Virus record (IMG/VR): IMGVR_UViG_3300028654_000384
Span: 151,858-215,857 of that record
DNA: 64,000 nt
Reading direction: 5' to 3' (one strand)
In this document: positions 20,964 through 47,446 of the stretch, piece by piece
Position numbering within the stretch: position 1 is the stretch's first letter
How the letters are laid out: every line of letters starts with the position of its first letter
Translations under genes and position numbers: made by a program
The notes under the pieces: generated by a model
Told to the model about the DNA's origin: nothing
What the model saw: the letters and a program-made list of their open reading frames with translations, nothing else
The model's database searches: none

Positions 20964-22052
20964 ATGACAATGGAACAGACCATGGAAACTGCACGCGCCT
21001 CTGCACAAATTAACGTGGGGCGGTTTTGGAAGACGCGTGTCTTCTCGTTTGTGGCATTAGCATCAATGGTGGGTGGCTGCGGCGCCATGGTGCGAGAGGG
21101 CTATTTTGTCACTACCGATTCCTTCGTTGCCCCGGCGATTTTGTCGCCTAATAACGATCTCGTCCTCGACGCACGTTTGAAGCTGGAACAAATCATGTTA
21201 CAGAAGGGTATTGCCGAACAGGCATTGACGGAAGCCGAGGGCGACATCAATGCAGGTGAACAAGCAACGATCAAGTTGATCGAATTGCGTGACACCATTA
21301 GTCATGCACTGACGTGGACCAGCAACTTGACAGGTGCGCAAGTGACGATGGGTAACGCCGATGTTAAGGTCATTGCGACACAGAAGGATGAGTTACAAAA
21401 CATGATTGCTCGTCAAGAGCAGCTAGTTGAAGACGCTAAATTGAATATGAATGGCGGGTTGATCGCGCGTCCTGATTATGACCGCGAGGTGCAGGCGCTT
21501 GACTCGCTGAAACTAGCACAGTTCGAAAATGACAGGACGCGTATGGCTAGCGACCTACAGTTGAAACAGGCTAGTATGGGTCAGCAGGCGCTACTTGCGG
21601 GTAAGGGCACCAAGATGCCGATGCCCGATCAGGTCATGGTATTGAACTCATTGATTACGGTCGAGGTGCAGTTGTTGCAGACGGAAGAATTGCAGAGAAC
21701 GAAGATTGCTGAGAAGGAAAAAGATCAGGAAGAATTGAAGAAGATTGAGTCGCTAGAGAGCGATCTGCGATCGCGGCCTATTTTCAAGGCAATTGATAGT
21801 AACGTAGATTTGAGCTTTGCACCATATTCTGCTTTGAAGAATATTGTTGTGGGTGCGAAAGTGATGAATTGTGTTTGGGGAGTTTTCAATTGTAAGGAAG
21901 TTGGAAAAGTGAAAGAAATTATCTCTGGTGAGGCAGTTCTTCCCGCAATTTTTGGAACGGGGCAAACAAGAGGACAATTTATTGCAGTTGAGCTAAATGA
22001 TGCAGATCATGATGCTTCAATGAAAAGTACGATTCTAAGAATCCGAAACTAA
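20964..22052 (+). CDS. Membrane-fusion (HlyD-like) or coiled-coil periplasmic adaptor
   Basis: N-terminal TM anchor, long coiled coil, beta-rich C-terminus; position between TolC-like and GT2 genes. Confidence 0.5.
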   Translation: MTMEQTMETARASAQINVGRFWKTRVFSFVALASMVGGCGAMVREGYFVTTDSFVAPAILSPNNDLVLDARLKLEQIMLQKGIAEQALTEAEGDINAGEQATIKLIELRDTISHALTWTSNLTGAQVTMGNADVKVIATQKDELQNMIARQEQLVEDAKLNMNGGLIARPDYDREVQALDSLKLAQFENDRTRMASDLQLKQASMGQQALLAGKGTKMPMPDQVMVLNSLITVEVQLLQTEELQRTKIAEKEKDQEELKKIESLESDLRSRPIFKAIDSNVDLSFAPYSALKNIVVGAKVMNCVWGVFNCKEVGKVKEIISGEAVLPAIFGTGQTRGQFIAVELNDADHDASMKSTILRIRN

Positions 22053-22062
22053 AGGACATCAG

Positions 22063-23805
22063 ATGGATACTATTCTTTGGCGTTTGCATGATTCCATGCA
22101 TCTTGCATGGGTTGTTATTTTTGCACTCGTAGTCAGTCTTTGTTTGCTCAACGTCCACTACATTCCTGTAGTATTTCGTACAGCATTCAGAAGGTTGGTA
22201 TCTGGCAATTCTTCACATACGCCCAAGAATATGGGCAATTGCCCTACTGGACTTGTAATCATTCCATCGCTGCTTAGAAACGAAGAAGATTATACCGCCA
22301 TCATTGCCACAGTAGAAAGTTGTGCTTCTAATCAATACCCCAATGATTTGTATATCATAGTTAGTATTGATGGGAAGAACGAGAATCAAAAATTATTTGC
22401 ACAACTAGCTAACTGGCTCGATTCAAGATCGTACTCTAACACTGTAAAACTGCACCTCACATATGATGAGGTTCGTCGTAGCAAAATGATGGCTATCGAT
22501 CGTGGGGCACAGTATATGAAAGCCCTTGTTGCTAGTGGCGCGGTGTCATCCTTTCCCACCATCTATTTTAGCATCGACGCTGACTCTATTCTTAGTGAGC
22601 AAGCTCTCAATAGAATGGCATCTCAGCTAAATACTCCACACCCAATTACCGGTAACAAAAGGCGAACTATTGCCGGAACTCCGATGGTTCACTCGCACGT
22701 GTTATGGCAAGGTTGGCGCTCATTCTTTACGATTGAAAATCAGATCTATCTCAATGTTGCTCGTATGTTTATGATGTCAGGTGTTGCTCGTAGCAATTTG
22801 GGTGTTATTCCTTACATTGGAGTGCCAGGAGCTATTTACGCTACTTGGAGTGAGATTCTATTGGATGCTCCTAAGTTTATGGGTTACATAAGATCCATTA
22901 CATTTATTGACTGGCTACGTTGGTGGGTGGGAATTCCTCTTCCTACGTTTGCAGAATCTAGCGCTGAGCCAATTCCTCAATTGTTGACAGGAAACACAGA
23001 TGATACAAGTATGGCGGTTGTAATTTCAATCTCTACTTGGCAAGACAATAGGTTTGTTCTTGAGTTGCCAAGATCTCCACTTCATGCGTTTGGCAGATTG
23101 CTTCGCTCTTGGTTTATTGAACGAACGCATAATCACGATCCAGAATCGAAAGCTTATACTTATGTTCCTCCTTCTATTAAGGGATTGTGGCTTCAACGAA
23201 AACGATGGAACAGCTCGAGAATTGAATTAAATTTGAGATTCTCAAAAGCATTTTTGTTTTGCTGGGACACTGGATTTCCGTTTATGTTTCAGCTATCTAT
23301 TGTTGGAATAATTTTCTTTCGAGTGTTGCTGACATACGTTATAATTCCATTCGTCATATTTGGTGAAGCCTCCAACGTCTTCTATTGTTTGATGGTGGGT
23401 ATGACGTTGAGTTTTATTTGTAATCTCATTCTTACATTGACCGCACTTGCAATGGATACTGAACGACGTAGATATTGGGCGGTGTTGCTTGCGTTACCAA
23501 CGGCTGGTTTGTTTTCTCTCGTGTTCGGTGCAACCGTAGGTATTTGGGGATTTATGAAAGACGTATTGTGGAAAGGAAACAATGTTAAATTCACACCAGC
23601 TTCTACGTTGATAACTGGTGGAAGTCAGCGAATTGCAATTGCATTTCGTGTTCAGCGATTCCTATCAATGTGTATTCGTTCATTACGATATGGTGATGTT
23701 CCGTTCGGTCTTTGGTGGGGATCTTGGTATGAAAGAGTGCCCTATGTTCGTAACGGTTATGCAGATTGGTCTAACAAAAAGAACAGTCAATACGTGCTAA
23801 AATGA
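22063..23805 (+). CDS. Processive membrane GT2 polysaccharide synthase (chitin/hyaluronan/cellulose synthase superfamily)
   Basis: D (SIDG), DxD (IDADS), TDD, QxxRW (QRKRW); one N-terminal and about three C-terminal TMs. Confidence 0.85.
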   Translation: MDTILWRLHDSMHLAWVVIFALVVSLCLLNVHYIPVVFRTAFRRLVSGNSSHTPKNMGNCPTGLVIIPSLLRNEEDYTAIIATVESCASNQYPNDLYIIVSIDGKNENQKLFAQLANWLDSRSYSNTVKLHLTYDEVRRSKMMAIDRGAQYMKALVASGAVSSFPTIYFSIDADSILSEQALNRMASQLNTPHPITGNKRRTIAGTPMVHSHVLWQGWRSFFTIENQIYLNVARMFMMSGVARSNLGVIPYIGVPGAIYATWSEILLDAPKFMGYIRSITFIDWLRWWVGIPLPTFAESSAEPIPQLLTGNTDDTSMAVVISISTWQDNRFVLELPRSPLHAFGRLLRSWFIERTHNHDPESKAYTYVPPSIKGLWLQRKRWNSSRIELNLRFSKAFLFCWDTGFPFMFQLSIVGIIFFRVLLTYVIIPFVIFGEASNVFYCLMVGMTLSFICNLILTLTALAMDTERRRYWAVLLALPTAGLFSLVFGATVGIWGFMKDVLWKGNNVKFTPASTLITGGSQRIAIAFRVQRFLSMCIRSLRYGDVPFGLWWGSWYERVPYVRNGYADWSNKKNSQYVLK

Positions 23806-24761
23806 AAATTTTATCGCTTATAGCTCTAGTACTGTCTTCGTGTGTAAGTAGCAATCTCTATTTTAGAGAAGTTCACGCTAAAAAGCCAACATTTTCATTA
23901 GAGGAGAAAAAAATGACAGTCATAAACAACGATTCTGTGCGTGGACTATTTGTGTGGGATGATGTTGCTAACTCAGAAGAGGAAATTACCAGTTTAGTAA
24001 CTTTTTGTAAAGTAAAGGAAATCAACGTAGTATATGCATCATTGTATAGTCACTTACTTGTAAAAAAAGATTTTGTCGCAGTTCAAAATCTACTCAATAG
24101 TTTGCATTCCAACGGAATAAAAGTTCATGCATTGTTTGGTAATTCAGATTACGGTTCCAAAAAACAATGGGTTGTTGAAAACGTTGGCGAAGCAGTAGTT
24201 CAATATAATTCAGTATCATCTGATAAAATCGATGGTGTGTTGCTAGACGCTGAGTATTGGTCTGGTAGTGCTGGACATCATACGCAAGCCGATGCGATAG
24301 GCATGATGGATCTAATAAGGGCACTAAAAATAAAAACTGGCACGCCAGTTGGATTTAGCCCTCCGTACTGGTTTGCAGATCCTAAAAATAATCAAGCGCT
24401 GGACGTTGTTTATGATGGACACACAATGAAAGAAGGTCAGCACATGATTTATGTTGCGGACTACGTTGTAGTGCAGGACTATTTTAGTGATCCACAAAAA
24501 CAGATTGAACATTTCAATCCGTGGTTTGATTTTGCAGTTTCTACCGGTAGAAATGTTGGTTTGGTGTTGGCATCAGAAGTTAGTGAGCCATCGAAACTAG
24601 CTCATGCCTATTCCTATAATAGACTACAGGTGGGTGATGAGGCGCACATGCAGTCTAGCCTGGCCAGCGTTTCGCAATTCTATACAATGAAGCACGGTGC
24701 AGACAGGGTATGGTGGGGTTGTGCTATTGAGCAGTATCGTTCGTATCGTCAGATGAAGTAA
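23802..24761 (+). CDS. Lipoprotein with TIM-barrel glycoside-hydrolase-like domain
   Basis: Lipobox LSSC; IDGVLLDAEY resembles GH18 DxxDxDxE with the middle Asp replaced. Confidence 0.55.
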   Translation: MKILSLIALVLSSCVSSNLYFREVHAKKPTFSLEEKKMTVINNDSVRGLFVWDDVANSEEEITSLVTFCKVKEINVVYASLYSHLLVKKDFVAVQNLLNSLHSNGIKVHALFGNSDYGSKKQWVVENVGEAVVQYNSVSSDKIDGVLLDAEYWSGSAGHHTQADAIGMMDLIRALKIKTGTPVGFSPPYWFADPKNNQALDVVYDGHTMKEGQHMIYVADYVVVQDYFSDPQKQIEHFNPWFDFAVSTGRNVGLVLASEVSEPSKLAHAYSYNRLQVGDEAHMQSSLASVSQFYTMKHGADRVWWGCAIEQYRSYRQMK

Positions 24762-34814: not shown

Positions 34815-36109
34815 ACAGGTTCGTTGCATCACGAAGAGGCAGCATCTATGCAGTCTCCAGTGCCCCCATCGTGGCTCCCGATGCTGTCGACACCGAAGTC
34901 GTTGAAGTACCAGACGTCCACGCTGACGTCGACACCGCCATGTTGATCACACACTTTCGGGTGCGCGGCGGCAAGGTACAACCGCGACGGGGCTCACCCG
35001 GCACCGCCAGTGCGTTGAAGTTGGCGCTGGTCGGCAACTGGAAGATGCGGTGCGGCATTGCCACGTACAGCGAGAACCTGTGGCCCGAAATCGCCAAACA
35101 CGTCGGCGACTTCAAGCTGTTCATCGAGAAGAATGAGCAACCCACTGGGCCCACCAACGTCATCGGCGACGTCGCTGTCCCACCTGAGAAGGTGCTGGCG
35201 TGCTGGCGGAGGGGCGAGCCGCTGGCCGAGCTGGTGAAGGCGATCAAGGACTATGAACCTGACGTGGTGCTAATTCAACACGAATTTGGCCTGTGGCCCA
35301 ACGCAGGACACTGGCTGTCGCTGATGAGCCAGTTGAGCAACTACCGCGTCATTGTGACGATGCACAGTGTGTTTCGACACCGTGACAAGACGATCGTCGA
35401 GGCGGCGATCCCCGAGATCGTGGTGCACCTCGAGGGCGCCAAGCGAGTGTTGAAAGAGGAGAAGGGGGTGCCCGGTGAGGTCTATGTCATCCCACACGGG
35501 TGTGCTCCAGTCACTGACGTTGAGCGCCTGTGGAATTTCTATAAGTCAGATCGAACGCTAATGCAATTCGGATTTGGCTTTAGATACAAGGGGTTTGAGC
35601 TGGCGATCAAGGCGACCGACGTGCTGCGGCGCAGGTACCCCGACGTCTTCTTCACCGCGTTGTTCAGCGAGTCGCCTTACAACTTGATCGATCACCAGGT
35701 CTATTACGACGAATTGATGCACCTCGTCGATGACCTCGATCTCCATAACAACGTGGCAATCATCCGGGGTTACCAAAGCGACACTTCGCTTGACTCCTAC
35801 ATGCGGACGAATCAGGCGATCCTGTTTCCCTACATCAGTCACCCGGAACACGAAGTCTTCGGTGCCTCGGGCGCCGCGCGGCTGGCGATGTCGAAGATGG
35901 CACCCATCGTCACTACGAGTGTCAATCACTTCAGCGACTTGCCGACGTTGAAAGCAGACACCCCTGAACAGATCGCCGATGCTCTTGACGCGATGTTCTC
36001 CAATCCGATCGCTCGCAAAGTGCAGGTCGATCGGCAACTAGCTTACTTGAACGACAACACTTGGGCTCGGGTTGGCGTCCGCTATGTAGAACTGTTCACG
36101 AAGGTGTAG
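34811..36109 (+). CDS. GT-B (GT4-like) glycosyltransferase
   Basis: CGIATYSENL, PDVVLIQHEFGLW, VTMHSV, VIPHG, FGFGFRYKGFE, FGASGAARLAM. Confidence 0.85.
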   Translation: MNRFVASRRGSIYAVSSAPIVAPDAVDTEVVEVPDVHADVDTAMLITHFRVRGGKVQPRRGSPGTASALKLALVGNWKMRCGIATYSENLWPEIAKHVGDFKLFIEKNEQPTGPTNVIGDVAVPPEKVLACWRRGEPLAELVKAIKDYEPDVVLIQHEFGLWPNAGHWLSLMSQLSNYRVIVTMHSVFRHRDKTIVEAAIPEIVVHLEGAKRVLKEEKGVPGEVYVIPHGCAPVTDVERLWNFYKSDRTLMQFGFGFRYKGFELAIKATDVLRRRYPDVFFTALFSESPYNLIDHQVYYDELMHLVDDLDLHNNVAIIRGYQSDTSLDSYMRTNQAILFPYISHPEHEVFGASGAARLAMSKMAPIVTTSVNHFSDLPTLKADTPEQIADALDAMFSNPIARKVQVDRQLAYLNDNTWARVGVRYVELFTKV

Positions 36110-36117
36110 TGTTATTC

Positions 36118-36480
36118 ATGGTCAAGCACGTAAATGAAAGGGCGACGCCTAAGACTGTGTTGTCGCGCGATAGTGACACGTATAGGCGGATCTATGACCT
36201 GCTTGAGGAACACACGTACAGCTTCATCACTGACGAGTGGAGCAAGAATCCGACTACTAATTCAGTTCGCATCGAACAACTTGAACCATTGTCACGCGAT
36301 GATGTGTTGGCACAAGCCATCAAGGACGGTGTGGCGCAAACAAAGGCAATCGACGCAGTCAAGCGTTATGAGCAACACGTATTGTTACACATCAATGATC
36401 AACGCGTCGTGGTGACCAAAAACGTGGCAAGTACAACCATGAAAGTGTTAGCTGATCATGTCGACGTAGAGGACACGTGA
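36118..36480 (+). CDS. Hypothetical protein
   Basis: Coupled to next ORF (GTGA). Confidence 0.6.
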   Translation: MVKHVNERATPKTVLSRDSDTYRRIYDLLEEHTYSFITDEWSKNPTTNSVRIEQLEPLSRDDVLAQAIKDGVAQTKAIDAVKRYEQHVLLHINDQRVVVTKNVASTTMKVLADHVDVEDT

Positions 36481-36734
36481 CCAAAGAATACCTCGATCTA
36501 AGCGACGCCGTCTTCTACGAACTCAACGGTCACAACATCATCGTCCGCGCTGACGTGCCCTACGCTGACATCGGTGAACACTTGTTGTTGTCAAAGTGTC
36601 AACGCTTCGTCGCCGCCGTCTCGCAGCAACCTTCGCAGCCCGTGTTGCTGTTCACGCTGGCAGACGGGCGCCGCTTCATCACTAGTGACACCACGCAGGT
36701 CGCACAAGACTACCTGAAGAAGCAACAGAATTGA
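36477..36734 (+). CDS. Hypothetical protein
   Basis: GAGGA SD; GC3 bias. Confidence 0.6.
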   Translation: MTKEYLDLSDAVFYELNGHNIIVRADVPYADIGEHLLLSKCQRFVAAVSQQPSQPVLLFTLADGRRFITSDTTQVAQDYLKKQQN

Positions 36735-36747
36735 CCTTCACCCGGGG

Positions 36748-37383
36748 GTGGGTTATGATCAGTCGGTGAGCGGCATAACTTCTTCTGCGGACAATAAAGA
36801 ACAAAAATTGTCGCCGGGTCAGATTAGTGGTATCAAGCGAAAGGCCCGCTTTGAAGCATTTATGGAAGCTTTATGGCCACAGATTCAGGAACTTTACTAC
36901 ATCAAACAAATGGCTTTGATTGAAGTAGTTGATGAATTACATCGTCAAGGACATCTTAAATTATCATACAGTCGTTTGCACAAATGGTTGAAGAGAAAAC
37001 ATCTGATGCAACCTAAAAAAATCAAAGTCATACAATGTGGTGTGCCATGGTGTGGTAAGATGTTTCATCCCACGAGTTCTACACAAAAGCGATGTAATGT
37101 CTGCGCACCAGATGGTGCTGCTAATAATCGTTGGAACAAATATCAGATGACACAACCACAATTTGATGAATTTCTTGTAAAACAATCTGGACTTTGCATT
37201 GGTTGTTTACGAACACTAACGCCTGGTGTCATGGGTAAAGGTCTTCCTCACGTAGATCATTGTCATATTACAGGTCGAGTGCGTGGAATCTTATGTATGA
37301 GTTGTAACACGGTGTTGGGTCAATTACAAGATGACCCATCAAGGTTACGTCGTTTGGCTACATATATTGAGAAAAATCGATGA
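36748..37383 (+). CDS. Endonuclease VII (His-Me finger) family protein, probable homing endonuclease
   Basis: QSGLCIGC..HVDHCHITGRVRGILCMSCN..LG; AT-rich relative to flanks. Confidence 0.85.
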   Translation: MGYDQSVSGITSSADNKEQKLSPGQISGIKRKARFEAFMEALWPQIQELYYIKQMALIEVVDELHRQGHLKLSYSRLHKWLKRKHLMQPKKIKVIQCGVPWCGKMFHPTSSTQKRCNVCAPDGAANNRWNKYQMTQPQFDEFLVKQSGLCIGCLRTLTPGVMGKGLPHVDHCHITGRVRGILCMSCNTVLGQLQDDPSRLRRLATYIEKNR

Positions 37384-38408
37384 CGATCCATGATCCACTT
37401 GTCAGACGTGTTTTACCTGTCGGAACAATAGATTTATGCGTCGGTGAATCGCACCTGGTACGGCAGGCACTTCGTGACACCTTCACCCCGCCGAGTACCT
37501 TCGACTTGCTAGACGTTACAAACAATTGTGATTATCAGGAACCAGAGGGTTATCCACCACTGGTACAATCGCTTGAGAGGCGTCATGGCCAACATGTTGT
37601 CATTACCGCTGGAGCAAAACAAGGATTGGCGGCATGCTTCTATGCTGCAAAGCGTATGGGTATGGACGGATTGACAATGAGAACTCCGTATTGGTCACAG
37701 ATGCCGCATGCAGCTAAGATTATGGGTCTTATGCCTCATTTTACAGATGCGCCCATCAATAATTGCGCACATTTAATTGTCTCACCAAATAATCCAGATG
37801 GCCACGTGATGTCGCTTGCCGATGCAGCAGTGTTGAAGGAGCAGTGTCGTCAGTTGGGGGTACCACTCATTCACGACGCTGCTTATCACACGCCAGTCTA
37901 TCTCAATGAAATGACGTGTGCTGACCCACTACCAGATCTGGCAGATATTACGATCTATAGCGTCGCCAAGATGTATGGGATGTCAGGTCTCCGCATAGGG
38001 TGGGTTACTTGCAAGGACTTGGACTTTAAACAACACGTCTGCGACTACGTCGAAACGACGACGGTGGGTGTGTCGGTGCTGTCACAGCGCACCGCTCACC
38101 GCATCATTCAACTGGAAGAGACGGTCCCCGGCCTCCGCGAATTGTTCACCCACCGCGCCCAACAATTACTGATCGAAGCGAAGAAAGTCGCAGCGAAATT
38201 GGACCCTGACGTGTTGGATGCAACAGGTGTCGAGCAATCGATCGGGATGTTTGGCTGGTTCAAGGTAGGCCCGCGATTCGACAACGAGATCGCGAGGATT
38301 GCAGTGGCTCACGGCGAGCACTTCGGCGATGAGACCCGCGTTAGGCTCAATCTCGCCGTTGAACCTCACCTGCTCTACGAAGCGATCAGTCGCCTCAACA
38401 GGCTGTGA
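37380..38408 (+). CDS. PLP-dependent aminotransferase class I/II
   Basis: IDLCVGE, ITAGAKQGL, SPNNPDG, IHDAAY, SVAKMYGMSGLRIGW. Confidence 0.9.
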   Translation: MTIHDPLVRRVLPVGTIDLCVGESHLVRQALRDTFTPPSTFDLLDVTNNCDYQEPEGYPPLVQSLERRHGQHVVITAGAKQGLAACFYAAKRMGMDGLTMRTPYWSQMPHAAKIMGLMPHFTDAPINNCAHLIVSPNNPDGHVMSLADAAVLKEQCRQLGVPLIHDAAYHTPVYLNEMTCADPLPDLADITIYSVAKMYGMSGLRIGWVTCKDLDFKQHVCDYVETTTVGVSVLSQRTAHRIIQLEETVPGLRELFTHRAQQLLIEAKKVAAKLDPDVLDATGVEQSIGMFGWFKVGPRFDNEIARIAVAHGEHFGDETRVRLNLAVEPHLLYEAISRLNRL

Positions 38409-45445: not shown

Positions 45446-45520
45446 CGAACCGTAGCTCAGCATGGTTAGAGCATCGCACTGATATTGCGAGGGTCAGGGG
45501 TTCGACTCCCTTCGGTTCGA
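45446..45520 (+). tRNA. trnI: tRNA-Ile(GAT)
   Basis: Full cloverleaf; TCGCA-CTGATAT-TGCGA; TTCGACT; CCA not encoded. Confidence 0.9.
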
Positions 45521-45751
45521 CGACGAAATCACACAAGAAGAAATCATGAATACCCAACCCGCACAGAAAAAGCTCGTAAAGCAGTGGCAGCGTTATGCTG
45601 TTGCTGCCAATCAAGATACGTGAGCGCGGAGCCTCTCAGCTTCGCAAACGCTCCGAAGCTGGTGAGATGAAGGTGAAGAAAGAGCCGACACCGAACCAGC
45701 CGAGGAGGAAAGGAACTTCCCTCGGCAATCGTCGTTTCGACACAACACACT

Positions 45752-45832
45752 GGTGTGCTATACCGCTATGGAGACGGGGCAGTCTGTAACACTGTCGCTT
45801 AAGCTCGCAGGGTTCGATTCCCTGGCGCACCA
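45752..45832 (+). tRNA. trnY: tRNA-Tyr(GTA)
   Basis: GGTGTGC/GCGCACC; CTGTAAC loop; long variable arm; TTCGATT. Confidence 0.9.
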
Positions 45833-45882
45833 CGACTGCGATGACGAAGGTCATCACGATCATTGACAATCTGCGTTCCTAT

Positions 45883-45956
45883 TGCTCGATAGCCAAGTTG
45901 GTACGGCAGCGCACTGTTAATGCGCCCATGCGCAGGTTCGAATCCTGCTCGAGCAG
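45883..45956 (+). tRNA. trnN: tRNA-Asn(GTT)
   Basis: GCGCA-CTGTTAA-TGCGC; TTCGAAT; G73. Confidence 0.9.
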
Positions 45957-45957
45957 C

Positions 45958-46028
45958 TCGGGTATCATACAGTGGTAGTATGACTGACTCTGACTCAGTT
46001 CACGGACGTTCGAATCGTTCTACCCGAA
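45958..46028 (+). tRNA. trnQ: tRNA-Gln(CTG)
   Basis: ACTGA-CTCTGAC-TCAGT; TTCGAAT. Confidence 0.85.
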
Positions 46029-46029
46029 C

Positions 46030-46102
46030 GGGCTCGTAACTCAATTGGTAGAGTACTCGGTTCTTACCCGAGAAGTTGAAGGTTCGACTCCTTTCGGGCT
46101 CA
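46030..46102 (+). tRNA. trnK: tRNA-Lys(CTT)
   Basis: CTCGG-TTCTTAC-CCGAG; TTCGACT. Confidence 0.85.
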
Positions 46103-46103
46103 C

Positions 46104-46178
46104 CTCCTCGTAGTTCAGCGGAATTAGAACGTCGGCCTGCGAAGCCGAAGGCCGTGGGTTCGAGTCCCACCGAGGAGA
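46104..46178 (+). tRNA. trnR: tRNA-Arg(GCG)
   Basis: TCGGC-CTGCGAA-GCCGA; TTCGAGT. Confidence 0.9.
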
Positions 46179-46275
46179 CGTGGCACCAGTAACTCAGTGG
46201 GAGCAATCTCATACCCTTCCCTTGACGAAGGTGTAGGTGAACAAGTGCCACTGCATGTTGTATGATTCAACTCAC

Positions 46276-46345
46276 GGAGGAGTAGCTCAGTGTAGAGCAG
46301 TGCCTGTACCGGCACAGGTCGTAGGTTAAACTCCTGCCTCCTCCA
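46276..46345 (+). ncRNA. tRNA-like RNA with 6-nt anticodon loop (TGTACC) and TTAAACT T-loop
   Basis: Perfect acceptor GGAGGAG/CTCCTCC, D-arm GCTC/GAGC, stem GTGCC/GGCAC. Confidence 0.75.
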
Positions 46346-46351
46346 CGATAC

Positions 46352-46422
46352 GGGAGAGTAGCTCAGAGAAAGAGCAGTGCCCTTGCTGGCGCAGGTCGGT
46401 GGTTTAATTCCATCCTCTCCCA
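46352..46422 (+). ncRNA. tRNA-like RNA with 6-nt anticodon loop (CTTGCT) and TTTAATT T-loop
   Basis: Perfect acceptor GGGAGAG/CTCTCCC, D-arm GCTC/GAGC, stem GTGCC/GGCGC. Confidence 0.75.
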
Positions 46423-46443
46423 CCGTCACTTCACGTGACGCAT

Positions 46444-46519
46444 GCCCTCGTAGCTCAGTTTGCAGAGCGCCGTCGATTTTAGACGGAGGTCGGTGGTCCG
46501 ATTCCATCCGAGGGCTCCA
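46444..46519 (+). tRNA. Atypical tRNA, nominal anticodon TTT (Lys), lacking U33, T-loop TCCGATT, CCA encoded
   Basis: GCCCTCG/CGAGGGC; CCGTC-GATTTTA-GACGG. Confidence 0.6.
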
Positions 46520-46531
46520 CATTCAACACAC

Positions 46532-46603
46532 GGATTCAGAACTCGAGTGGCAGAGTTCCCGGCTTTTACCCGGGTAGTGACGGTTCGAGCCCGTCTGGAT
46601 CCA
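46532..46603 (+). tRNA. trnK: tRNA-Lys(TTT)
   Basis: CCCGG-CTTTTAC-CCGGG; TTCGAGC. Confidence 0.85.
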
Positions 46604-46679
46604 CGCAGACGAGTGACGCGGTTCACTGAAGCTTCATACGCTTCAAACGCCATGGTTCGACTCCGTGGGTCTGCAACCA
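46604..46679 (+). tRNA. tRNA with CAT anticodon (Met/Ile2/initiator-like), atypical
   Basis: GAAGC-TTCATAC-GCTTC; C1:A72 mismatch; 6-bp T-stem; CCA encoded; no GGG/CCC anticodon stem. Confidence 0.7.
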
Positions 46680-46683
46680 CTTT

Positions 46684-46756
46684 CACCCCGTAGATCAGCG
46701 GCAAGATCGCTTGCTCGACACGCAAGAGACCGTGGGTTCGAGTCCCACCGGGGTGA
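46684..46756 (+). tRNA. trnV: tRNA-Val(GAC)
   Basis: CTTGC-TCGACAC-GCAAG; TTCGAGT. Confidence 0.9.
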
Positions 46757-46886
46757 CGACGCGAATGAGCGTCAGTGTAAGTAACTAACAACAGTACACA
46801 TTGATATGGGTAGGTGAAAGCCGTCTCGGCCGGGACGATGAGTAACCACAGTACCTAAGCACTTCGGTGCTGGTGCAACCAAACAT

Positions 46887-46963
46887 GGGGCCAACAGGCG
46901 AGTCGCGCAGCAAAGCCAACATGGAAGCTGAGCGCACGGCGGGTTCGACTCCCGCTGGCTCCA
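46887..46963 (+). ncRNA. 77-nt RNA resembling the tRNA-like domain of tmRNA (no mRNA-like domain)
   Basis: GGGGCCA/TGGCTCC with G3.U70, A73, canonical T-arm GCGGG-TTCGACT-CCCGC, no D-stem, long helix in place of anticodon arm. Confidence 0.55.
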
Positions 46964-47031
46964 CGAGTGACACCTACTGGATATTGCTAGCATCAAAAGT
47001 GGTGTGACATCGGGGAGAGACCCGACAATTT

Positions 47032-47102
47032 GGGGCGTTGATCTACCGCGATGATTCCTGACCTGCAATCAGGCCGACCGGGTTGGATTCCCGGACGCTC
47101 CA
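47032..47102 (+). tRNA. trnA: Atypical tRNA-Ala(TGC)
   Basis: GGGGCGT/ACGCTCC with G3.U70; CCTGA-CCTGCAA-TCAGG (C33); T-loop TTGGATT. Confidence 0.7.
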
Positions 47103-47115
47103 CTCGTTGTGAATT

Positions 47116-47186
47116 GGTGATGTGCGCCACGGGAGGCGACTTCCCTGTCTAGGAAGCGTACGCGGGTTCGAATCCCGTCATCATCG
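47116..47186 (+). tRNA. trnD: tRNA-Asp(GTC)
   Basis: CTTCC-CTGTCTA-GGAAG; TTCGAAT; G73. Confidence 0.85.
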
Positions 47187-47187
47187 C

Positions 47188-47262
47188 AGGGGTATCATTC
47201 AGCGGCTAGGATGTCCGCCTCCAAAACGGATCACCTCGGTTCGAGTCCGAGTGCCCCTGCCA
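47188..47262 (+). tRNA. trnW: tRNA-Trp(CCA)
   Basis: CTCCAAA loop; TTCGAGT; G73 plus encoded CCA. Confidence 0.85.
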
Positions 47263-47272
47263 CTTTTCTCAC

Positions 47273-47340
47273 GTCACTGCTTCGGCGGCCGAAGTGAACC
47301 ATGGGCACATCGCGCGCACGTTCGAGTCGTGCCGGTGACA
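47273..47340 (+). pseudogene. Degenerate tRNA (acceptor and T-arm intact, anticodon arm unpaired)
   Basis: GTCACTG/CGGTGAC; GCACG-TTCGAGT-CGTGC. Confidence 0.5.
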
Positions 47341-47369
47341 CACATAAATAGGAACGCAGGTTATCACAC

Positions 47370-47446
47370 TGGCCACTCGTCTAAAGGCAGGACCCCGCGC
47401 TTTGAACGCGGATGAAATGTGGGTTCGACTCCTACGTGGCCAACCA
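47370..47446 (+). tRNA. trnQ: tRNA-Gln(TTG)
   Basis: TGGCCAC/GTGGCCA; CCGCG-CTTTGAA-CGCGG; CCA encoded. Confidence 0.85.

Follow-up and report, generated by a model that had tools for sequence, protein, structure and literature searches.

Two adjacent short-loop tRNA-like genes of an uncultured rhizosphere phage as probable non-decoding tRNA mimics with relatives in other viral contigs

The final 64,000 nucleotides (64 kb; positions 151,858 to 215,857, here called the window) of the 215,857-base virus contig IMGVR_UViG_3300028654_000384 from IMG/VR carry an array of transfer RNA (tRNA) genes, two adjacent members of which, here named odd 1 and odd 2, combine perfectly paired cloverleaf stems with anticodon loops of six nucleotides. 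Judging from their sequences and from those of their relatives, both genes are probably non-decoding tRNA mimics maintained by selection. A decoy role is about half as likely as that, and the best overall explanation that we can propose, selected non-decoding mimics with a decoy or ligand role, is offered tentatively.

The two genes were characterized using ARAGORN, Rfam and minimum-energy folding (Table 1). ARAGORN lists them as genes 7 (46276-46346) and 8 (46352-46424) of the array, both labelled tRNA-??? with two-base anticodons, i.e. with six-nucleotide loops. Odd 1 has a 7-base-pair (bp) acceptor stem, GGAGGAG/CTCCTCC, followed by A73; its D-loop is AGTGTA, its anticodon arm GTGCC-TGTACC-GGCAC, its variable loop AGGTC and its T-arm GTAGG-TTAAACT-CCTGC, and CCA is not encoded. 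The corresponding elements of odd 2 are the acceptor stem GGGAGAG/CTCTCCC with A73, the D-loop AGAGAAA, the anticodon arm GTGCC-CTTGCT-GGCGC, the same variable loop AGGTC, and the T-arm GGTGG-TTTAATT-CCATC, after which the sequence reads CC and not CCA. The original prediction, which was made from the letters alone, had described the acceptor stems, the common GTGCC 5' anticodon strand, the variable loop and both pairs of anticodon and T-loops at these positions, and all of them agree with our analysis. It had also called the D-arms canonical, and this holds for the stems only, since both D-loops are short and lack the conserved G18-G19.

All the stems have the lengths found in canonical tRNA (7-bp acceptor, 4-bp D, 5-bp anticodon and 5-bp T stem) and are perfectly paired. 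The scores against the Rfam tRNA model RF00005 are 52.9 bits for odd 1 and 51.2 bits for odd 2 (gathering score 29), and one missing anticodon-loop base is the sole shortfall in the alignment to this model. Moreover, the cloverleaf is the minimum-energy structure of each gene folded alone, with ensemble frequencies of 0.80 (odd 1) and 0.84 (odd 2) and fold z-scores of -4.0 and -3.1, respectively. Normal decoding needs a seven-nucleotide loop with U33 and a purine at position 37, and a six-nucleotide loop cannot present a normal anticodon; neither gene has a loop of the required type. The G18-G19/psi55-C56 elbow is also absent, the D-loops being without GG and position 56 being A or T, and the T-loops keep T54, T55 and A58. 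In place of the G3:U70 alanine identity pair of transfer-messenger RNA (tmRNA), A3-U70 is found in odd 1 and G3-C70 in odd 2. A match to the Rfam model YrlA that spans both genes (25.6 bits, cut-off 69) was rejected as an artefact of adjacent tRNA-like arms.

A third non-canonical gene, called tRNA-Lys(ttt) by ARAGORN, lies further along the array. Its D-loop, AGTTTGCA, has no GG, its seven-nucleotide anticodon loop GATTTTA has A33 replacing U33, and its T-loop is TCCGATT. The T-stem is identical to that of odd 2, and T73 is followed by an encoded CCA. This gene aligns with the family of GG-less D-loops described below, and resembles a short-loop gene found in a sister clade of phages (L011, L337; here and below, L-numbers are the labels of matched loci or contigs in this analysis).

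Six-nucleotide loops might be the product of sequencing or assembly errors, i.e. of one-base deletions in normal tRNA genes, and some CTTTAA loops in long-read metagenome-assembled genomes do resemble homopolymer errors. For odd 1 and odd 2 we give this explanation next to no credence. Over 2,074 bases, a second IMG/VR contig (L005) matches at 100% identity. Both genes are also spanned, with neither a difference nor a gap, by Logan contigs that come from three further rhizosphere samples, although these are assembler contigs and not raw reads, so that rare variants could be hidden. Since the same sequence is present in the second IMG/VR contig and in the contigs of three samples, the six-nucleotide loops are not an assembly deletion. 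Additionally, the deletions of odd 1 and odd 2 lie outside homopolymers, and diverged relatives share the short loop. The independent contigs keep the six-nucleotide loops, with no seven-nucleotide versions among them, and the short loops are thus real. As a separate observation, the start of L005 coincides with the first base of odd 1, and the Logan contigs of run X9 break at 46276-46281; the break at 46276 may be an assembly-graph branch or a strain rearrangement point.

Almost all tRNAs have the standard loop size, and the few exceptions include "tRNAs in a phage", none of which is known to frameshift (PMC5009743). Among the matches listed for loci picked by a canonical tRNA pattern, six-nucleotide loops were found in 4 of 696 unique phage tRNAs and eight-nucleotide loops in none. 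The array studied here has six-nucleotide loops in two of its 15 genes, which are adjacent, and this difference indicates that the short-loop pair is more than chance. When all the fetched loci are considered, D-loops without GG occur in 14 of 37 six-nucleotide-loop genes, compared to 28 of 964 seven-nucleotide-loop genes. A scan for 18-nucleotide arms gave mostly normal seven-nucleotide loops with an extra base in the variable region, and about three distinct true eight-nucleotide loops.

Two other groups of short loops were observed in cellular sequences. In Solirubrobacterales, other Actinomycetota and some Chloroflexota, we found tRNA-Arg-like genes that are solitary and have six-nucleotide loops of the type N-TCG-M-A, normal D- and T-loops and perfect covarying stems (L237, L242, L261, L268 and L287; further loci include L288, L299, L307 and L322), which appear to be a conserved short-loop tRNA-like lineage. 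In long-read metagenome-assembled genomes, many six-nucleotide CTTTAA loops were found (L244, L247, L248, L251, L305, L316 and others); they resemble the tRNA-Lys loop CTTTTAA with one base of the homopolymer deleted, and call for caution in surveys of loop size.

The conservation of the fold was analyzed at three levels. Between odd 1 and odd 2, three pairs (3-70, 4-69 and 51-63) have undergone compensatory double changes, the wobble pair 50-64 is flipped, and no pair is broken. Relatives for the covariation analysis were found by a pattern on the D-arm, the variable loop and part of the T-stem only; the acceptor and anticodon stems were outside the search pattern, so that their pairing was not imposed by it. 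In the nine aligned relatives, 100% pairing is observed in all four helices, and both sides have changed in 13 pairs; none of 500 shuffles was as good as this alignment, and slid registers drop to 41-53% paired. The third level is a sister clade with 54-59% protein identity to this phage. In a pair of sister-clade phages, the flanking DNA differs by 15.4% and the short-loop gene at one of 74 positions (P about 6e-5), while its two odd neighbours have 0/78 and 4/76 changes, the four being two compensatory pairs. Taken together, the compensatory changes between the paralogs, the complete pairing in the nine relatives and the conservation in the sister pair support what had been proposed from the intact stems, namely that selection, and not decay, has given rise to tRNA mimics. 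Tertiary covariation at 19:56 was also considered and was discarded, as it is possible in only three of the nine relatives and position 56 changes freely while the D-loop stays fixed.

The sister-clade locus (L011:2421-2655; also L020, L027, L028 and L033) deserves a separate description. Its short-loop gene has the loop TTTTAA, or TCTTAA in L028, and is flanked by two genes called "Ile(aat)", which have different bodies, a common nine-nucleotide loop, AGTAATGAC, and an A.C mismatch closing it. At the L011-type locus, three odd tRNA-like genes form a conserved cluster.

In order to describe the relatives of odd 1 and odd 2, a family was defined by its D-arm and T-arm only, with the length of the anticodon arm left free: D-arm GCTC-AGNGAAA-GAGC or GCTC-AGTGTA-GAGC, variable loop ending in GGTC, and T-arm NNNGG-TTNNNNN. 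Odd 2 fits the AGNGAAA class and odd 1 the AGTGTA class. The family was found in viral contigs only, 58 in total, many of them large; among short-arm matches, the AGNGAAA D-loop was seen in 0 of 96 cellular loci versus 10 of 31 viral loci. The AGNGAAA class comprises 38 distinct sequences in 46 viral contigs (13 of them at least 100 kb long), with a perfect 7-bp acceptor stem in 36/38, a 5-bp T stem in 37/38 and an encoded CCA in 27/38. Its anticodon-arm segment ranges from 17 to 25 nucleotides, versus 19 in canonical tRNA, and the predicted loops have four nucleotides in 12 of the 38 sequences (including GCAA and UUCG caps), five in 7, six in 8 and seven in 5. For the AGTGTA class, 12 contigs yielded 11 distinct sequences, whose stems are all perfect; the anticodon arm ends in a tetraloop cap in three of them, in a six-nucleotide loop in two and in a seven-nucleotide loop without U33 in five, and is canonical in one. 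For both classes combined, the 7-bp acceptor stem is present in 47 and the 5-bp T stem in 48 of the 49 distinct sequences.

After filtering for acceptor stems of at least 6 bp and T stems of at least 4 bp, which removed two poorly paired sequences, only 4 of 48 family members have an anticodon arm able to decode normally. The arms of the other 44, odd 1 and odd 2 among them, are of several types: GNRA or UUCG tetraloop caps, loops of five or six nucleotides, long hairpins (in some relatives the anticodon arm is a 9-10-bp hairpin), and seven-nucleotide loops without U33. In contrast, canonical arms are found in 6 of 8 like-for-like controls (P = 1.6e-4) and in 886 of 964 phage tRNAs with GG D-loops (about 92%). 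The homologs are therefore mostly non-canonical, and neither this comparison nor that with the independent contigs refuted the original prediction. The closest homolog of odd 2, in a 332-kb phage (L010), has the same D-loop and T-arm and an anticodon arm capped by C-GCAA-G, and L341 has an acceptor stem in common with odd 2, together with a 6-bp anticodon stem and a six-nucleotide loop. Moreover, a Lys-like UUU core with A33 is present on at least four different bodies (46444 in the window, L337, L363 and L369).

Two family loci contain further unusual genes. At L010:2638-7583, a tmRNA, two suppressor-type tRNAs with CTA anticodons and a Gln-like gene with a 15-nucleotide arm lie beside the capped-arm gene, and at L034:710-1915, in a 434-kb provirus record, three six-nucleotide-loop genes are accompanied by a CTA suppressor-type tRNA. 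Both of these phages may use recoded stop codons.

The possibility that such genes are dead tRNA genes, kept as scaffolds because RNase P and 3' processing of a packed array need tRNA-shaped units, has to be weighed against these data. The array is indeed dense, with 6 nucleotides between odd 1 and odd 2; short-loop genes arise sporadically on many unrelated tRNA bodies in viruses and cells; and no specific partner or target was found. However, a scaffold leaves unexplained the conservation of D- and T-loop sequences across dozens of unrelated phages, the encoded CCA in 27 of 38 sequences, and the single change in 74 positions, loop included, as opposed to 15% in the flanks. Deleting a unit would be simpler than maintaining it, and the tetraloop caps resemble a designed stable hairpin and not decay. 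We thus regard the scaffold as unlikely.

A second alternative is that odd 1 and odd 2 still decode, perhaps inefficiently, as nuclease-resistant tRNAs of the Val/Tyr type (odd 1) and the Ala/Gln type (odd 2). A phage tRNA-Val(TAC) in L004 is informative in this respect. It shares the 5' anticodon stem and the 5' T-stem of odd 1 and has a normal seven-nucleotide loop, a D-loop without GG and a non-TTC T-loop. The non-TTC T-loops of odd 1 and odd 2 had been counted as defects, and this part of the original prediction has to be given up, since a tRNA-Val with a normal loop has the same kind of elbow. It follows that an altered elbow alone is no proof of a non-decoder, and that it is the anticodon arm that sets the pair apart. 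When odd 1 is aligned with this same-body tRNA-Val, its loop is a Val loop with U33G and with A37 deleted; odd 1 also keeps A35, C36, A73 and G45, which we take to be identity elements for valyl-tRNA synthetase. The loop of odd 2 can be read as an Ala-type loop without A37. The registers Tyr (odd 1) and Gln (odd 2) are equally possible, and no identity was assigned. Also in favour of decoding, the sole difference between the sister-clade genes of L011 and L028 is at a wobble-like loop position (UUU versus CUU), and nuclease-evading loop changes are a published model (PMC10264068). On the other hand, normal decoding depends on a seven-nucleotide loop that has U33 and a purine at 37, natural exceptions being very rare (PMC5009743), no decoding of any kind is possible for the relatives whose arms are tetraloop-capped or form 9-10-bp hairpins, and the G19-C56 elbow pair, which is contacted by the ribosome, is lost. 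Continued decoding is therefore quite unlikely in our opinion.

Frameshift-inducing or doublet-decoding tRNAs for the programmed recoding of phage genes are a further alternative, the size of the loop being what classically makes a tRNA a frameshift suppressor (PMC5009743). Natural odd-loop tRNAs, including those of phages, are nevertheless not known to mediate frameshifting (PMC5009743), the loop sequence is not conserved in the relatives, many of which have no codon-pairing loop, and the open reading frames (ORFs) of the window read through normally under translation table 11. This role is exceedingly improbable. More generally, an action on T-boxes or RelA, or in frameshifting, presupposes that an anticodon is presented, and fits poorly with the relatives capped by GNRA or UUCG.

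Non-ribosomal aminoacyl donors, i.e. RNAs that are charged, excluded from the ribosome and used by an aminoacyl-transferase as in the case of Staphylococcus tRNA-Gly, would agree with acceptor stems as diverse as those of isoacceptors and with the retained CCA. The non-proteinogenic staphylococcal tRNA-Gly is also without G18-G19 and T-psi-C. The acceptor ends, however, lack anticodon-independent identity marks (G3:U70 is found in one of 38 sequences, and the G-1/C73 combination in none), so that efficient charging seems unlikely, and most synthetases need an anticodon, which is missing from tetraloop-capped arms. Among the genes next to family members, none for a Fem-type or other aminoacyl-transferase was seen, no genome-wide search having been made. 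We consider a donor role very unlikely.

Returning to selected, non-decoding mimics, the following mechanism can be proposed. As the data above indicate, the cloverleaf body (the acceptor stem, the short D-arm without GG, the variable loop and the T-arm, with a CCA end in most cases) is kept by selection, and the anticodon arm is freed from the decoding constraint, in odd 1, odd 2, the 46444 gene and the family. The RNAs would be transcribed with the array and excised by RNase P and 3' nucleases, and their CCA end would be completed by the phage's own CCA-adding-type nucleotidyltransferase. They would then act as decoys or competitive ligands of tRNA-binding host proteins. The most likely of these proteins are defence enzymes that target tRNAs, for example anticodon nucleases or toxins modifying the acceptor end, and a decoy of this kind would stay out of translation. 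It follows from established knowledge that RNase P and the CCA-adding enzyme would recognise such RNAs and that normal decoding is impossible. The decoy role is the weakest step of the explanation. Hints for it come from the three Lys-type genes of the array, from the recurrent UUU/A33 core, whose presence on several bodies suggests mimicry of a known nuclease target, and from phage tRNAs that counter tRNA-cleaving immunity (PMC11464382, PMC10264068). The changes at loop positions 32/33/37 are only suggestive of altered nuclease sites. A still broader interpretation, which is possible but rather doubtful, is that the family represents a widespread, undescribed class of "anticodon-less" mimics that is concentrated in large and jumbo phages, its RNAs being matured like tRNAs and inhibiting or sponging tRNA-directed host immunity.

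It is important to mention that several observations weigh against this interpretation. Odd 1 and odd 2 do not have tetraloops, and anticodon-like triplets remain in their loops (GUA or UAC in odd 1; UUG or UGC in odd 2), which may leave some decoding or synthetase recognition possible. The borders of the family are arbitrary, resting on sequence patterns of our own making. No population variation was found in the two genes among the compared contigs. A search for a recurring partner protein beside family members found none outside one clade of related phages. Acceptor stems vary widely in the family, which is unexpected for a decoy of one acceptor-specific enzyme. Finally, the known anti-defence phage tRNAs are functional, non-cleavable replacements and not decoys (PMC11464382).

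The positions of the genes and of the surrounding features are given in Table 1. The phage is uncultured and comes from the rhizosphere, where it is present in at least 17 metagenome runs, with no RNA run among those listed; the CheckV completeness of its contig is about 63%. The phage encodes an OmpA-domain protein, a hint that its host is Gram-negative. Of the remaining 12 genes of the array, most have, according to ARAGORN, seven-nucleotide loops with U33 and a TTCGA-type T-loop, and the array is neighboured by genes for an aminotransferase, a dNMP kinase and a sigma factor. We failed to find close relatives among cultured phages, either by a DNA search or by a search with a 580-amino-acid protein. 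All matches of the sigma factor to cultured phages were below 40% identity, and a search via the dNMP kinase gene upstream of the array did not retrieve relatives. Outside the window, at G000:C1:86870-88009, the contig encodes a 379-amino-acid nucleotidyltransferase of the PolyA_pol family with an RNA-binding domain, which is probably a CCA-adding enzyme; its presence fits the lack of an encoded CCA in odd 1 and odd 2. RtcB and peptidyl-tRNA hydrolase were not found on this incomplete contig, and a search for T4 RNA ligase 1 gave no match even in control genomes.

Table 1. Features of the tRNA array region (window coordinates).
Feature	Position	Strand	Detected by	Remarks
tRNA array	45446..47446	+	ARAGORN	15 genes, the sole ones on the 216-kb contig
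Sigma-70-like match, TGAACA-17-TATGAT	46238..46266	+		Ends 10 nucleotides upstream of odd 1
Odd 1 (tRNA-like gene 1)	46276..46345	+	ARAGORN, Rfam, minimum-energy fold	
Odd 2 (tRNA-like gene 2)	46352..46422	+	ARAGORN, Rfam, minimum-energy fold	
Third non-canonical gene, tRNA-Lys(ttt)	46444..46516 (to 46519 in the wider span)	+	ARAGORN, Rfam	Rfam score 45.7 bits

The sigma-70-like match upstream of odd 1 is a possible, weak candidate for an internal promoter (three sites of this type were found, versus 1.3 +/- 1.0 expected in shuffles). The 96-nucleotide gap between tRNA-Arg and odd 1 also contains a 72-nucleotide element (46180-46251, + strand) that was not called as a tRNA; it is closed by the perfect 7-bp stem GTGGCAC/GTGCCAC, folds weakly (z -2.0) and may be a decayed tRNA-like unit. 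Elsewhere in the window, low-GC islands are located at 22001-24000 (0.41) and 36001-38000 (0.47), compared to about 0.58 overall, the first of which overlaps a 580-amino-acid ORF without a Pfam or phage match.

Comparison with known systems shows both likenesses and differences. The nuclease-evading phage tRNAs, namely T5 tRNA-Lys against PARIS and the tRNAs of mycobacteriophage C1 against VapC and related tRNases, are also located in phage tRNA arrays and also have altered anticodon stem-loops, and they plausibly take part in the same conflict with tRNA-targeting defence (PMC11464382, PMC10264068). Those tRNAs are functional decoders with seven-nucleotide loops that replace depleted host tRNAs and carry base substitutions only, whereas odd 1 and odd 2 have neither a seven-nucleotide loop nor an intact anticodon, and replacement is impossible with six-nucleotide loops and tetraloop-capped relatives. 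The tRNA-like cluster of murine gammaherpesvirus 68, in which only three of eight genes have a seven-nucleotide anticodon loop (PMC4810235), provides a viral precedent, but one from a eukaryotic virus, with RNA polymerase III units, no homology and other biology.

More distant parallels can be drawn as well. The tRNA-like genes of murine gammaherpesvirus 68 are linked to viral microRNAs. The T4 stable RNAs C and D ("species 1 and 2") are small RNAs of the T4 tRNA cluster with no assigned role, are co-processed with tRNAs and are partly tRNA-like; unlike the genes described here, they are not known to form full tRNA-length cloverleaves. Staphylococcus tRNA-Gly and Bacillus cereus tRNA-Other share an altered D-/T-loop elbow and act outside ribosomal translation, but they are cellular, charged RNAs with a seven-nucleotide loop whose functions, in cell-wall synthesis and regulation, are known or partly known. 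The tRNA-like domain of tmRNA and mascRNA keep the top half made of acceptor and T-arm, with the anticodon arm missing or reduced, and are processed by tRNA enzymes; tmRNA, however, has an mRNA module and G3:U70, the pair seen only once among the 38 family members, and mascRNA is eukaryotic. A literature search yielded no description of phage tRNA-like genes with a conserved body and a short-loop, degenerate or capped anticodon arm. This phage family of tRNA look-alikes is thus apparently undescribed, although virus tRNA-like RNAs as such have precedent.

Codon supply and the replacement of destroyed tRNAs, the current answers to the question of what phage tRNAs are for, both assume working decoders. 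Here, a conserved and intact phage set has dropped the decoding loop and kept all the features that tRNA-handling enzymes recognise. Annotation pipelines discard genes of this kind as undetermined or pseudo-tRNAs, so that their number is probably underestimated. If the RNAs are expressed, they would be ready probes for the host or phage proteins that bind them, and would show that phages employ the tRNA shape in a second way, in which it serves as a ligand instead of an adaptor. If the broader interpretation, that they sponge or inhibit tRNA-directed host immunity, is true, this would be an RNA-based anti-defence strategy distinct from that of replacement tRNAs.
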